A stretch of 24,957 bases of DNA from Octopus sinensis (taxonomy: Eukaryota), in NCBI RefSeq assembly GCF_006345805.1, contig NW_021824467.1, positions 1 to 24,957 on the forward strand, in the 5' to 3' direction. Position 1 is the stretch's first letter. Every line of letters starts with the position of its first letter. The notes under the pieces are model-generated. The model did not search any database and was not told the DNA's origin. It saw only the letters and a program-made list of their open reading frames with translations. Of this stretch, positions 5,107 through 22,594 are shown piece by piece. The translations under genes and the position numbers were made by a program.

Positions 5107-5549
5107 CCGGTGGCACACAAGAAAACCATCCGAACGTGGCTGTAGCCAGTACCGCATCGACTGGCCTCCGAGCTCTGGGCACGTAACAAACACCATCCGA
5201 TCGTGGCCGTTCGCCAGCCACATCTGGCACCTGTGTCGGTGGCACATAAAAACACCATCTGAGCGTGGCCGTCTGCCAGCCTCGTCTGGCACCTGTGTCG
5301 GTGGCACATAAAAAACACCATCCGAGCGTGGCCGTTCGCCTGCCTCGTCTGGCACCTGTGTCGGTGGCACATAAAATCACCCACTACACTCTCGGAGTGG
5401 TTGGCGTTAGGAAGGGCATCCAGCTTTAGAAACACTGCCAGATCTGACTGGCCTGGTGCAGCCTTCAGGCTCCCCCGACCCTAGTTGAACCGTCCAACCC
5501 ATGCTAGCATGGAAAGCGGACGTTAAATGATGATGATGATGATGATGAT
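5107..5549 (+). mobile_element. family B retroposon with internal 62-63-bp tandem repeats and (GAT)n tail
   Basis: GGTGGCAC anchors at 5238, 5300 and 5363, with degenerate ones at 5109 and about 5177. Same 3' end as 4670-4857. Confidence 0.8.
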
Positions 5550-9539: not shown

Positions 9540-10195
9540 GATAATAATCCTTTCCACTAAAGGCACAAGGCCTGGAATTTTGGGGCAGGGGATTAGCCAA
9601 TTACACCGACCCTAGTGCGTAACTGGTATTTATTTCATCGACCCCGAAAGGATGAAAGGCAAAGTCGACCTCAGGTTTCAAATTTTACCACAAGGGCAGC
9701 ACTTTTGGGGGAGGGGACGAGTCGACTACATCAACCTCAGTGTCCAATTGGTACTTAATTTATCGCCCTCGGCGGAATTTGAACTTGGAACCTAACGACA
9801 CACGAAATACCGCCAAGCATTTCATCTGGCGCGCTAACGATTCTGCCAGCGCGAATAATAATAATAATTCTTTCTATTATAAGCATAAGGTCTAAAATTA
9901 TGGGAGAGGGGGGATAATTGATTACATGAACCCCAGTATTCAACTGGTACTTATTTCATTGTACCTCTGAAAGGATCTAAGGCAAAGTCGAGTTCAGCAG
10001 AATTTGAACAAAATATCGTTTCTACTATAAGGTTCAAGGCCTGAAATTTTGAGGGAGCGAGGAAGCCGATTACATTGACCCCAGTACTCAACTGGTACTT
10101 ATTTTATCGACCCCGGAAGGATGAAAACCAAAGTCAACCTCAGAACACGTAGATGGATGAAGTGTCGCTAAGCACTTCGTCCAGTGTGCTATCCT
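9540..10195 (-). mobile_element. four more head-to-tail family C SINEs, some truncated
   Basis: Copies at about 9540-9672, 9674-9850, 9855-10010 and 10015-10195. Confidence 0.8.
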
Positions 10196-10444: not shown

Positions 10445-10925
10445 TGAGATTAGCTCGTATACGAGTGGGTATATATTGTATATACCGGTCTGGACTGGCT
10501 ACCTAACAGGTGAATAAAACCAAAACAATCACAAGGTTCGCCAGAACGATCCAGCAAACACCGACCAAAGTCACATCACAGTTACTCAAGGTAAAATCTA
10601 AAATGAATTCCTCGCGCTCTTTCAGAACACCAATTTTTTATATTGACTGCATATCACACTTTGATCTATTTTTTATATTGAATGCATATCACCACTATGA
10701 CTACTACATCATACTCTCTAAACAATAGCATGAACGAACTCACTTCACGATATATGAACTTTTGATGTCTGACTCTATTGTAATTATAAATGAATTTTTT
10801 TATATTTGATAGCATGAACTATCTTTTTTTTTATATAACTTTTTTTGATAAGGTTCTCAAGAACCGAAACATGTTATAATGTATATATAACAAATTAAAA
10901 ATTTGTCTACTATGCAGCACTTTCG
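10445..10925 (+). mobile_element. possible Penelope-like fragment between (TA)n tracts
   Basis: Bounded by (TA)n on both sides. Contains hammerhead-like TTGATAA-GGTTC tcaa GAACC-GAAA-CATGT at about 10845-10875. Confidence 0.35.
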
Positions 10926-17755: not shown

Positions 17756-17979
17756 TGGAATTTTTCACTCGCGTTGGTTTACTGATATTTCTTTTCCAAT
17801 ATTCTCATCGTTGCTATTTTCATTGACATCGTCTTTATAATGCCCTCCCACCAATTCTATATTTCTTACTGAAACATCATCGTTTTCCTCTTCTAAAGTG
17901 TTTCCTTTTACATCAGGTTTCTACACAAGTCCTTTTTACTCTCATATTACGCAATAACAACGTCTACATTTTATTTACA

Positions 17980-18166
17980 ATGGACTGATATGTGTCCTCC
18001 CCTTGTTTGTTGTTACCACAACGTTTCTGCTGATGTACCCTCCAGCCTTCATCAGGTGTTCTGCTGGAACTTCGAACCCAACTCTTTATTTGACTAATGG
18101 GGTACTCTTTTCTCATTCTTAAGGTATTTTTTGCTGATATTATTACTATTTAATTATTCAAGTCAC
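17980..18166 (-). mobile_element. body of a SINE-like / Penelope-derived element carrying a hammerhead, downstream of the tRNA-like heads
   Basis: Continuous on the minus strand with the last tRNA-like unit. Its 3' ~75 bp recurs inverted at 18670-18752. Confidence 0.6.
18017..18058 (-). ncRNA. minimal type-I hammerhead ribozyme motif
   Basis: Minus strand CAC-CTGATGA-A-GGCTG gagggtacat CAGCA-GAAA-CG-TT-GTG. Intact CUGAUGA and GAAA, stem I CAC/GTG, ACGU palindromic stem III, GUU cleavage triplet. The base of stem II is a G.A mismatch (C in the paralogous copy at 18693). Confidence 0.65.
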
Positions 18167-18664
18167 TGCCTGAGATTGAACCCAGTATCCCACGCTCTTA
18201 ACCGCTACGCTATATGCCCGTGGGCAATTATAGAGTGTATTCTGGGGTTTGCCTGAGATTGAACCCAGTATCCCACGCTCTTAACCGCTACGCTATATGC
18301 CCGTGGGCAATTATAGAGTGTATTCTGGGGTTTGCCTGAGATTGAACCCAGTATCCCACGCTCTTAACCGCTACGCTATATGCCCGTGGGCAATTATAGA
18401 GTGTATTCTGGGGTTTGCCTGAGATTGAATCCAGTATCCCACGCTCTTAACCGCTACGCTATATGCCCGTGGGCAATTATAGAGTGTATTCTGGGGTTTG
18501 CCTGAGATTGAACCCAGTATCCCACGCTCTTAACCGCTACGCTATATGCCCGTGGGAAATTATAGAGTGTATTCTGGGGTTTGCCTGAGATTGAACCCAG
18601 TATCCCACGCTCTTAACCGCTACGCTATATGCCCGTGGGCAATCATAGAGTGTATTCTGGGGTT
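18167..18664 (-). repeat. six near-identical 83-bp tandem units, each a truncated tRNA-like head (A-box and B-box)
   Basis: Unit starts at 18167, 18250, 18333, 18416, 18499 and 18582; only three single-base variants seen. Minus strand: TAGCGTAGCGG (A-box), 19 nt, GGTTCAATCTC (B-box-like). Confidence 0.9.
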
Positions 18665-18752
18665 ATAAACCCGATGATGAAAGTACATCAGCCGAAACGT
18701 CGTGGTAACAACAAACAAGGTGAAAATACCTATCCGTCCATTACATAATCCC
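18665..18752 (+). mobile_element. inverted partial copy of the hammerhead and 3' segment (degenerate)
   Basis: GTACATCAGCCGAAACGTCGTGGTAACAACAAACAAGG...GTCCATT is the reverse complement of about 17980-18038. Core CCGATGA; the 5' arm of stem II is deleted; GUC triplet. Confidence 0.7.
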
Positions 18753-18882: not shown

Positions 18883-19078
18883 ATTCCTTTAATCAGTTAT
18901 TCTACTCCAAGGTCCATTCCTTTAATCAGTTATTCTACTCCAAGGTCCATTCCTTTAATCAGTTATTCTACTCCAAGGTCCATTCCTTTAATCAGTTATT
19001 CTACTCCAAGGTCCATTCCTTTAATCAGTTATTCTACTCCAAGGTCCATTCCTTTAATCAGTTATTCTACTCCAAGGT
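18883..19078. repeat. 33-bp VNTR, about 6 identical copies
   Basis: ATTCCTTTAATCAGTTATTCTACTCCAAGGTCC at 18883 + 33n. Confidence 0.95.
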
Positions 19079-20136: not shown

Positions 20137-20297
20137 CAATTTGGAAGGAAGTAGGCATGTTTCCAGTAACGGAACAGAAACTGGACGAGCAAGAATGTTC
20201 TATGAAGCATAATGGCTACCTATTAAATGTGGAATTATGGGAAATTTAAAGAGGACATAGAAAACCCCACGGGGAACGGAAAGATAATGTAACACAA

Positions 20298-20348
<51 letters not shown>

Positions 20349-20696
20349 TTGTGTGTATAAAATACAGGGTATGCTGGATATATTGTCGCCATTTTATATT
20401 TTGTCTGACAGCCATGACTGGGTTCTCCTGCTTGTGTGGCATGGTGCAGAGTCCTGTTGCCAGGCATAGGTCTTCCAGCAGCCACCCTCTTGACCCAAGG
20501 CAGCACTACCAAGCATCGAATGCAGGCCTCCGTGTTGAGTCTGAGATCGTGTGGGAAGATGAATGGAAGCACGACGTCGCCATCACTAGCGATCACTCCA
20601 AACACCATGATGCTGGCTGGTTGTTTGGTTTTTCATCACTCTCGCTACATATCCACAGATTGACACCCAAACACTCTGAAATGTTCATAATGGAGC
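20137..20696. repeat. local complex duplication: inverted copy of 22557-22789 fused to a direct copy of 22110-22406
   Basis: Manual alignment. Junction at 20401-20402 with TT microhomology. Contains TA plus maT TIR at 20363-20402 and a frameshifted transposase fragment. Confidence 0.85.
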
Positions 20697-21738: not shown

Positions 21739-22594
21739 CAGGGTGCGGTGAATATATTGTCGTCTAAATTACGCAAAAATAAAAATTACCCTGATATCTC
21801 ATTTTAACAGATATATTTACCAATATTCCATAAAAATATCTTAAATTAAATGATTAAATTTATTCAATAAAATCGCCATTCGCTTCAACCATGGCCTCCA
21901 GACGACTTCAGAATCTCCAACAACTCTTCTGGAGGGTCTCTGTGTTTAAGTGGGTGAATGCTGCCATAATCCTTGCCTTCAGTTCATCTTTGGTGTTACA
22001 AGGAGTTTTGTTGGTCTCTCACTCAGTTGTGTCCCACACATAATAATCAAGGGGGTTGCAGTCTGGGGAGTTAGGTGGCCAGATGTTAGGGGTAATGTGG
22101 TCGCAGAAATTGTCTGACATCCATGACTGGGTTCTCCTGCTTGTGTGGCATGGTGCAGAGTCCTGTTGCCAGGCATAGGGTCTTCCAGCAGCCACCCTCT
22201 TGGCCCAAGGCAGCACTACCAAGCATCGAATGCAGGCCTCCGTGTTGAGTCTGAGATCGTGAGGGGAGATGAATGGAAGCACGACGTCGCCATCACTAGC
22301 GATCACTCCAAACACCATGATGCTGGCTGGTTGTTTGGTTTTTCATCCCTCTCGCTACATGTCCTCAAATTGACACCCAAACACTCTGAAATGTTCATAA
22401 TGGAGCGTCTGGTGTGAATGCCAAGCAGTACAGCATGTTTCCAAATTTCTGGTAAAGTGAATTGTGTCACTGTGCTGTTTTTCTTACAGACGGTGCCCAA
22501 CTGACCCTACTATACTATGTCGTTGACAAAATCAAAAACAAACAATGCGTGAAATTAAAATATAAAATGGCGACAATTTATCCAGCGTACCCTG
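21739..22594 (-). mobile_element. internally deleted maT (DD37D) Tc1/mariner-superfamily DNA transposon
   Basis: TA flanks at 21737-38 and 22595-96. Imperfect ~26-bp TIRs CAGGGT(G/A)CG(G/C)TG(A/G)ATA(T/A)ATTGTCG. Transposase motifs WQQDSAPCH and WPPNSPDCNPLDY, with 37 residues between the second and third Asp. Confidence 0.9.
21860..22470 (-). pseudogene. maT transposase pseudogene
   Basis: N-terminus (TQFTLPEIWK...NISECLGVNLRT) fused near 22360 to ...MVFGVIASDG...LDYYVW...SRLEAMVEANGDFIE*. Stops and frameshifts; the segment that should hold the first catalytic Asp is deleted. Confidence 0.85.

Follow-up and report, generated by a model that had tools for sequence, protein, structure and literature searches.

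Analysis of a 24,957-nucleotide stretch of Octopus sinensis DNA (RefSeq assembly GCF_006345805.1, contig NW_021824467.1, positions 1 to 24,957 of the forward strand; hereafter the window) revealed a composite insertion around a hammerhead ribozyme motif of the type carried by Penelope-like elements (PLEs). With a probability of roughly 0.6, we read this locus as an old, inactive insertion of a non-coding cephalopod retroelement of ~280-330 nt, which resembles a short interspersed nuclear element (SINE), bears a Penelope-type hammerhead, was inserted in the style of a PLE and later had its head amplified. The anatomy of the insertion, its family, the linkage of its parts, the hammerhead type and a recurrent head-to-head layout were observed; mobilisation by a Penelope enzyme, transcription by RNA polymerase III (Pol III) and catalysis are what we infer. 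A preliminary description of the window had proposed a non-autonomous, hammerhead-bearing retroelement of Penelope type with a promoter-like head, and this core idea holds on the strength of linkage, hammerhead type and insertion layout.

A minimal hammerhead of the Penelope type

The minus-strand sequence from 18058 to 18017 reads CAC CUGAUGA A GGCUGG AGGGUACA UCAGCA GAAA CG U U GUG and contains the catalytic core CUGANGA...GAAA...U-H in type-I order. The minimal type-I hammerhead proposed for this site was recovered as the sole match in the window (both strands) to a relaxed descriptor that called for CUGANGA, GAAA and U-H, with four or more base pairs in helix II and three or more in helix I, and that allowed a bulge and a palindrome without demanding them. 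This descriptor gave one match per 1000 dinucleotide-preserving shuffles, a p-value that is optimistic because the descriptor was composed after the site had been seen.

Minimal hammerheads without helix III have been reported from PLEs and Terminons (PMC7229834; PMC7761336), and the traits that emerged for PLE hammerheads outside the pattern used to find them are an additional base separating A9 from 10.1, a helix II as long as 6-8 bp with a conserved G10.1-C11.1 pair, the absence of helix III and a palindrome at 15.1-16.1 (PMC4209133). The window copy has the extra nucleotide (A at 18048), as do 12 of 13 aligned relatives, lacks helix III and has a palindromic ACGU at 15.1-16.1, which is kept in 12 of the 13. 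The conserved G10.1-C11.1 pair fails in the window copy, where G.A is followed by five pairs. Across 17 distinct relatives this position is G:C in seven, G.U in four and unpaired in six, and the consensus has G:C and a 6-bp helix II. With its extra base after A9, 6-bp consensus helix II, missing helix III and palindromic ACGU, the motif conforms at the level of sequence to the PLE-type hammerhead, and the assignment made earlier to the PLE minimal type stands, with G10.1-C11.1 present in the consensus though not in the window copy.

The G.A mismatch suspected at the base of helix II was located at 10.1-11.1, and as most relatives have C at 11.1, the suspicion that the window copy is impaired is borne out. 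We regard this copy as dead on account of the mismatch, the deletion in its inverted twin (see below) and the absence of a second hammerhead in cis.

Relatives of the element and linkage of its parts

Relatives were found by comparing the translated element with protein collections built from public contigs and then turning to the source contigs. A 50-aa open reading frame (ORF) across body, hammerhead and tail led to P0001, whose contig (L001) carries a full-length but diverged copy (77% over 224 nt), which has one head and shares its 5′ end, GGTTTATAA, with the window copy. An antisense profile led to P0002 (UniRef A0A0L8HDC6_OCTBM), a 49-aa 'uncharacterized protein' of Octopus bimaculoides; since P0002 is the antisense translation of a further copy, the family occurs in octopus. 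P0002 itself, an antisense and frame-shifted repeat translation, is very likely a spurious gene model. When a translated-tail profile was compared with 1.8 billion representatives, 13 matches were obtained, in which conservation is strongest at TPDEGWR...KRCGNN, encoded by CCUGAUGAAGGCUGG ... GAAACGUUGUGG, the catalytic core. Besides L001, the window family, whose contigs stem from octopus sequencing runs, includes a full-length copy (L005), a copy that runs from the end of the B box onward and is cut by the contig end (L003), a 5′-truncated copy nested in an ORF fragment resembling a long interspersed nuclear element (LINE) (L004), and two headless copies (L006 and L007), in which truncation is indistinguishable from the contig end because both contigs start inside the (AAT)n linker; L008 and L009 are further contigs from the profile matches. 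Exact look-up of two window ORFs and of P0008 returned no record, and scanning metagenome and viral collections for DNA patterns yielded no matches.

The window-family consensus reads ACAC CUGAYGA A GGCUGG AGAGUACA UCAGCC GAAA CG UU GUGAUAAC. Its C at 11.1 completes the 6-bp helix II and restores G10.1-C11.1, so the consensus possesses both the CUGAUGA/GAAA core and paired stems. Distributed over at least 10 independent loci, the copies are short, non-coding and dispersed, with a 5′ end common to the window and L001 and with L004 truncated.

P0004 and P0006 led to L002 and L010, two 20-kb loci of an ENA assembly, and a gapped DNA pattern led to L011 (CBDHDV010000339.1), a contig filed under a metagenome-assembled genome (MAG) of Rubritalea sp. 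that is plainly animal DNA. Besides four copies of the hammerhead element, L011 harbours microsatellites, SINEs of tRNA type, a motif of the Ceph/RTE domain and a ~120-bp tandem array; it is animal DNA binned into a bacterial MAG, the host being probably a cephalopod. These three loci carry a sister family with a body, a hammerhead and a tRNA-like head that is longer, and its perfect hammerheads read ACAC CUGAAGA A GGCCGG AGGACAUA UCGGCC GAAA CG UU GUGG. The Ceph/RTE marker CCAGCTATGGGTT, present in L010 and L011 and absent from the element and the window, hints at squid or cuttlefish as the bearer of the sister family.

In a multiple alignment, homology between the window and sister families begins at the B box and takes in body (GGAATGAGAACAG..CCCC..AATAAAGGGTT.AGTTCGAAGTTCC), hammerhead and tail; the hammerhead is the best-conserved stretch between them. 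By eye, the 5′ half of the window head resembles the L002 head, with ~30 nt missing mid-head in the window. Head or B box, body, hammerhead and tail follow the same order in L001, L005, L003, L002, L010 and L011. The linkage of head and hammerhead, which the preliminary description had left to be examined in other copies, was present in all full-length copies recovered, and the occurrence of one inherited unit in two diverged lineages excludes chance adjacency.

Two further sequences were noted in L010. Within 10663-10860, a diverged minus-strand hammerhead, TCAC CUGAAGA A UGCCAG ... UUGGCC GAAA CG UA GUGA, lies in a different context, has A:U at 10.5-11.5 and is preceded by a near-perfect hairpin with ~60-nt arms (10718-10860). 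At 9787-9800, ~80 bp upstream of the full element and on the same strand, an isolated ACC GAAACGTT fragment (13 bits, E=0.34) may be the remnant of a partial tandem copy.

Conservation of the fold

The structure alignment comprised 13 sequences, or 17 distinct ones after L011 was added. In the hammerhead register 83-85% of the cells pair, compared with 15-47% when the 3′ partner is slid. RNAalifold predicted helix II unaided, and for the L002 motif the minimum-free-energy fold has precisely helices I and II and leaves the core open. At pair 10.4-11.4, six sequences have U:A, four to seven C:G and two U.G, with U:A characterising the window family and C:G the sister family, and pair 10.5-11.5 includes one A:U. 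A covariance model built from the alignment scored the four unseen L011 motifs at 40-64 bits; the window hammerhead scored 73.6 bits in this model, its sequence being part of the training set. Judged from the sequences, the hammerhead fold is compatible with the copies and conserved in them. A competing hairpin, CUGAUG/CAUCAG, was rejected, being neither the minimum-free-energy fold nor conserved in relatives, unlike helix II.

Anatomy of the insertion and its head-to-head layout

On the minus strand the element runs 5′ to 3′ from GGGTTTAT (18672-18665) through six units, body and hammerhead to an AC-rich tail, which extends to ~17965 and carries a TGTAAATAA-like terminal repeat (Table 1). The linker between units and hammerhead, previously put at ~110 nt, measures 108 nt (18166-18059) and consists of an A/T-rich (AAT)n-like stretch followed by a conserved block, GAATGAGAA..CCCCATTAGTCAAATAAAGAGTTGGGTTCGAAGTTCC. 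The outer ends of the composite (17965 and 18749) were set where similarity to L001 and L003-L007 stops and are uncertain by ~10-30 bp; upstream of GGTTTATAA the window and L001 sequences are unrelated. No further copy of the element was found in the window by self-BLAST, and the covariance model gave none beyond the two known sites.

Table 1. Features of the composite insertion in the window
Feature	Position	Strand	Remarks
Whole composite insertion	17965..18749	.	Inverted truncated copy, 5′ end, head array, body, hammerhead, tail
3′ tail, GUGGUAACAACAAACAAGGGGAGGACACAUAUCAGUCCAUUGUAAAUAAAAUGUA	17965..18019	-	Downstream of predicted cleavage site; conserved in all window-family copies
Minimal type-I hammerhead motif	18017..18058	-	Descriptor, covariance model
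Helix I	18058-18056 with 18019-18017	-	CAC/GUG
Core CUGAUGA	18055-18049	-	
Extra A after A9	18048	-	Unpaired base between A9 and 10.1
Helix II	18047-18042 with 18033-18028	-	G.A at base
GAAA	18027-18024	-	
Palindrome ACGU	18024-18021	-	U16.1 at 18021
H17 = U	18020	-	Predicted cleavage between 18020 and 18019
Body/linker, 108 nt	18059..18166 (read 18166-18059)	-	Homologous in L001, L005, L003; sister family L002, L010, L011
Six tandem 83-bp units	18167..18664	-	Tandem Repeats Finder, repeat search
Each 83-bp unit: 30-nt leader AACCCCAGAATACACTCTATAATTGCCCAC + 53-nt head		-	A-box-like TAGCGTAGCGG, B-box-like GGTTCAATCTC
Element 5′ terminus GGGTTTAT, running on as AACC into first unit	18665..18672	-	5′ end common to L001
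Inverted 5′-truncated hammerhead + tail, outward-pointing	18673..18749	+	Inverted-repeat search, blastn, covariance model

Directly 5′ of the array, at 18673-18749 on the plus strand, we found the diverged inverted copy of the hammerhead and 3′ segment that had been described there. The inverted-repeat arms (17979-18038 and 18683-18742) are 60 nt long, 87% complementary and 644 nt apart (blastn E=1.7e-15), and extend ~20 nt further inward if an 8-nt indel is allowed. In the inverted copy the core is AUGAUGA, which departs from CUGANGA, an 8-nt deletion has removed the 5′ strand of helix II, C stands at 11.1 and GAAA lies at 18694-18697. A covariance model trained without that copy scored the remnant (18665-18709) at 22.2 bits (E=9e-4).

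Paired copies lying head to head, their tails outward, were seen at three loci, namely the window, the 10024/10025 junction of L002 and ~3690-3520 of L011. L002 and L010 also contain partial tandems of hammerhead and tail in 129-nt units, and a minus-strand copy in L002 ends 38 nt short of the end of the tandem units. PLE insertions are often accompanied by an inverted 5′-truncated copy beside the 5′ end, by partial tandems and, at one of their ends, by an optional tail of 30-40 bp (PMC8557442), and the inverted 5′ extension that had been taken as a PLE signature matches this published layout and recurs at L002 and L011. Paired minimal hammerheads on opposite strands 100-700 bp apart have been reported (PMC4209133), and with a purified PLE enzyme both target strands were cleaved and extended, reverse transcription starting at internal sites (PMC11167929).

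The same evidence bears on whether the element could be an ordinary LINE-dependent SINE of tRNA type, with a LINE-derived tail whose hammerhead-like sequence has no ribozyme role and an inverted copy produced by LINE-type rearrangement. Such a SINE would fit the terminal tandem repeat of the tail, TGTAAATAA-TGTAAATAAT, which is like some stringent LINE/SINE tails, the LINE-like reverse transcriptase (RT) fragments near some copies, and the richness of octopus genomes in LINEs and SINEs (PMC13282606). We consider this explanation rather improbable, given the head-to-head, tails-outward layout at three loci, a hammerhead of the helix-III-less kind known from PLEs and Terminons, and the better conservation of this hammerhead than of any other stretch between the families. 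Twin priming of a LINE (L1) continues the RNA further 5′ and would not yield a duplicated 3′ module, whereas the inverted piece here duplicates precisely that module, hammerhead and tail.

The 87%-matching inverted repeat flanking a tandem array, together with TTACA beside both arms on the plus strand, could also recall a non-autonomous DNA transposon (a miniature inverted-repeat transposable element or foldback element) with ~80-bp terminal inverted repeats around an internal satellite. We judge this highly improbable, as the six relatives L001 and L003-L007 have one arm in one orientation and no partner arm, the TGTAA/TTACA beside the arm is element sequence in other copies, and the 5′-truncated L004 indicates retroposition. 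TTACA/TGTAA was also tried as a target-site duplication and rejected: TGTAA follows GTCCAT in other copies too and is therefore element sequence.

The head, its box-like motifs and the six-unit array

The six 83-bp minus-strand tandem units of the preliminary description were recovered by Tandem Repeats Finder (18167-18664, period 83, 6.0 copies, 98% matches, score 975). In each, the A-box-like TAGCGTAGCGG matches at 10 of 11 positions and the B-box-like GGTTCAATCTC at 9 of 11, with 30 nt from start to start; the A box lies 45 nt from the 5′ end of the element, and the multiple alignment revealed a conserved B box in every head-bearing relative. Four consecutive T do not occur on the sense strand inside the element, which would allow Pol III to read through, and the box-like motifs make transcription by Pol III plausible. 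In three copies (window 18665-18672, L001 77-85 and L010 9869-9877) a TTTATAA lies at the 5′ end of the element or directly ahead of it, and a second TATAAT lies 12 nt before the head in the window and L001 leaders.

Six heads do not characterise the family: all head-bearing relatives recovered (L001, L005, L002, L010 and L011) are single-headed, and the near-identical units point to local amplification. The six units differ at only 3 positions, while the arms of the insertion diverge by 13%, which indicates that the array is younger than the insertion. By this comparison the array is best read as local post-insertion amplification of leader and head, or as the outcome of later homogenisation. 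The label of retrozyme had to be abandoned, since the tandem units have no hammerhead and the only direct hammerhead is a single one, so that no unit-length circle could be excised from this locus.

Proposed mobilisation and the Penelope link

If the element was mobilised by a PLE, its RNA would be made from the internal head by Pol III, or by read-through, and its 3′ module (hammerhead plus tail) would be recognised and copied by the RT-endonuclease of an autonomous PLE. By cleaving and extending both target strands, this enzyme would generate a full copy and an inverted 5′-truncated second copy, arranged head to head with tails outward. The hammerhead of the source RNA might cleave in trans as a dimer via the ACGU palindrome, or might act mainly as a recognition structure; in vitro, insertion by a Penelope enzyme did not need hammerhead cleavage (PMC11167929). 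After insertion, unequal exchange or slippage would have multiplied leader and head into six copies in tandem. A broader and much more tentative proposal, about which we remain doubtful, is that cephalopods carry an old superfamily of Pol III-driven PLE parasites with tRNA-like heads ('PLE-SINEs'), in which hammerhead and tail constitute the module recognised by the Penelope enzyme.

A number of observations weigh against mobilisation by a Penelope enzyme or against particular parts of this reading. No PLE RT or GIY-YIG gene was found in the 25-kb window or the fetched loci, and the RT near the L002 copy (2061-2579) matches the generic family RVT_1 only and looks LINE-like by eye, for which reasons it was rejected as the PLE partner. 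No target-site duplication was definable for the window insertion, an optional PLE-type 3′ extension common to L001 and the inverted copy of the window was not significant and is not claimed, and the tail ends in a short repeat (TGTAAATAA twice) that recalls some LINE/SINE 3′ ends. Helix I, CAC/GUG, has 3 bp compared with the 4-5 bp of PLE minimal hammerheads, though it is conserved, with 84-87% of cells paired. Covariation was not significant against shuffles, 48-53 of 500 reaching the observed score, and is thin, consisting essentially of one lineage-level switch from U:A to C:G and one A:U. Rfam hammerhead models had no match in the window or in 100-nt slices at gathering and permissive thresholds, formally a point on the same side but uninformative, because the same models miss the perfect L002 motifs.

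The head had been described as tRNA-like with A and B boxes, and of that description the term 'tRNA-like' is the weakest; box-like motifs at tRNA-like spacing are indeed there, but no tRNA model recognises any of the heads, ARAGORN reporting no tRNA and the Rfam tRNA model giving no match even with 100-nt slices of three heads. An A/B-box pair of such quality is expected 0.24 times per shuffled window. In addition, a 38-nt leader upstream of the head, common to the window and L001, is at odds with a simple type-2 Pol III start, since such a start would not transcribe it.

PLE insertions are heavily 5′-truncated, and most genomic minimal hammerheads have been read as truncated PLEs (PMC4209133; PMC8557442). 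The copies described here might likewise be plain 5′-truncated fragments of autonomous PLEs, derived from the pseudo-long-terminal-repeat (pseudo-LTR)/3′ region, in which the 'head' is untranslated PLE sequence resembling the boxes and no separate family exists; the failure to recognise a tRNA in the head and the clear 5′ truncation of L004 would suit this explanation. We think it unlikely, for the 5′ ends are discrete: the window and L001 copies both start at GGTTTATAA with unrelated sequence upstream, and the copies in L002, L010 and L011 begin no more than a few nt from the first base of the head. Furthermore, no coding sequence runs upstream in any copy, and the unit length of ~300 nt is kept across two diverged families.

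Comparison with known systems

Sm-alpha of schistosomes carries a canonical, active type-I hammerhead with helix III and loop contacts, whereas the octopus motif is of the minimal PLE type and its host belongs to a different phylum. The octopus element can be likened to Sm-alpha/Sj-alpha by architecture alone, both being short non-coding retroposons with 5′ A/B-box-like motifs and a hammerhead further 3′ (PMC4209133).

With the minimal hammerheads of PLEs (PMC4209133; PMC7761336) the octopus motif shares the type-I order, CUGANGA/GAAA, the extra base at A9/10.1, a long helix II, no helix III, ACGU and a short helix I, as well as the occurrence of many scattered solo copies and of opposite-strand pairs a few hundred bp apart. 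Unlike them, it lies in a discrete non-coding unit of ~300 nt with a promoter-like head and a body, its helix I has 3 bp, and it stands outside the pseudo-LTR of any element with RT and GIY-YIG, with no PLE gene nearby in the window or fetched loci. The insertions themselves resemble those of PLEs in the inverted 5′-truncated copy by the 5′ end, the partial tandems, the variable 3′ ends and the hammerhead near the 3′ region (PMC8557442; PMC11167929), but they have no ORF, and the optional 30-40-bp tail extension, not convincing in the window family, is suggested in L002 alone by the 38-nt difference.

Animal non-LTR retrozymes (PMC7229834; bioRxiv 10.64898/2026.07.22.740005) are likewise non-coding, hammerhead-bearing and proposed non-autonomous dependants of PLEs, and each 129-nt head-to-tail repeat of the L002/L010 relatives carries a hammerhead as theirs do; retrozymes differ in having canonical hammerheads, repeats of 170-400 nt and no tRNA-like head. 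The head-body-tail design and a body kept across diverged lineages are shared with the tRNA-derived CORE, Ceph and Meta SINEs (PMC4824008, PMC5786205), which unlike the octopus element depend on LINEs, often have RTE-derived parts and lack a hammerhead; the marker CCAGCTATGGGTT is absent here. The parts and logic of the element are thus already known from Sm-alpha, PLE minimal hammerheads and retrozymes as PLE dependants, and no description of such an element in cephalopods was found in the papers searched, Repbase and Dfam lying outside that search.

Minimal hammerheads are scattered by the thousands through animal genomes. A compact non-coding element that keeps head, body and hammerhead-tail across two diverged cephalopod families isolates the part that should matter for mobilisation, and would offer a convenient substrate for asking whether the motif is a ribozyme or a recognition structure for the Penelope enzyme, and whether Penelope has SINE-like dependants. 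Should the PLE-SINE proposal be true, it would provide the PLE counterpart of the LINE-SINE partnership, and many 'solo' PLE hammerheads in animal genomes would be parts of SINEs rather than truncated PLEs. For annotation, the element accounts for a class of octopus calls labelled 'unclassified SINE' and 'solo hammerhead', and it marks at least one protein entry as spurious and one MAG contig as contaminated.

Other features of the window

About 130 bp past the inverted copy, at 18883-19078, lies a perfect (100%) tandem array of 5.9 copies of a 33-bp unit, ATTCCTTTAATCAGTTATTCTACTCCAAGGTCC, which is dissimilar to the element; either it arose very recently or the assembly has collapsed it. Five other A/B-box pairs with a tRNA-like spacing of 28-45 nt were found, at 1184 (+), 2122 (+), 3812 (-), 20971 (+) and 22830 (+); three of these share the same sequence (TGGCTGTGTGG ... 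GGTTCAGTCCC) and come from a single abundant SINE of tRNA type, which is not related to the hammerhead element. Two minus-strand ORF fragments resembling DDE transposases, at 20246-20608 and 22019-22318, have their first ~47 residues in common; one continues as QQDSAPCH..DCNPLDYYVW (weak Pfam DDE_3 match, E=0.004) while a (GT)n run interrupts the other, and the pair looks like a duplicated Tc1/mariner-like remnant. At 5178-5376 the otherwise AT-rich window contains a GC-rich 63-bp tandem repeat (3.2 copies, 89% matches).

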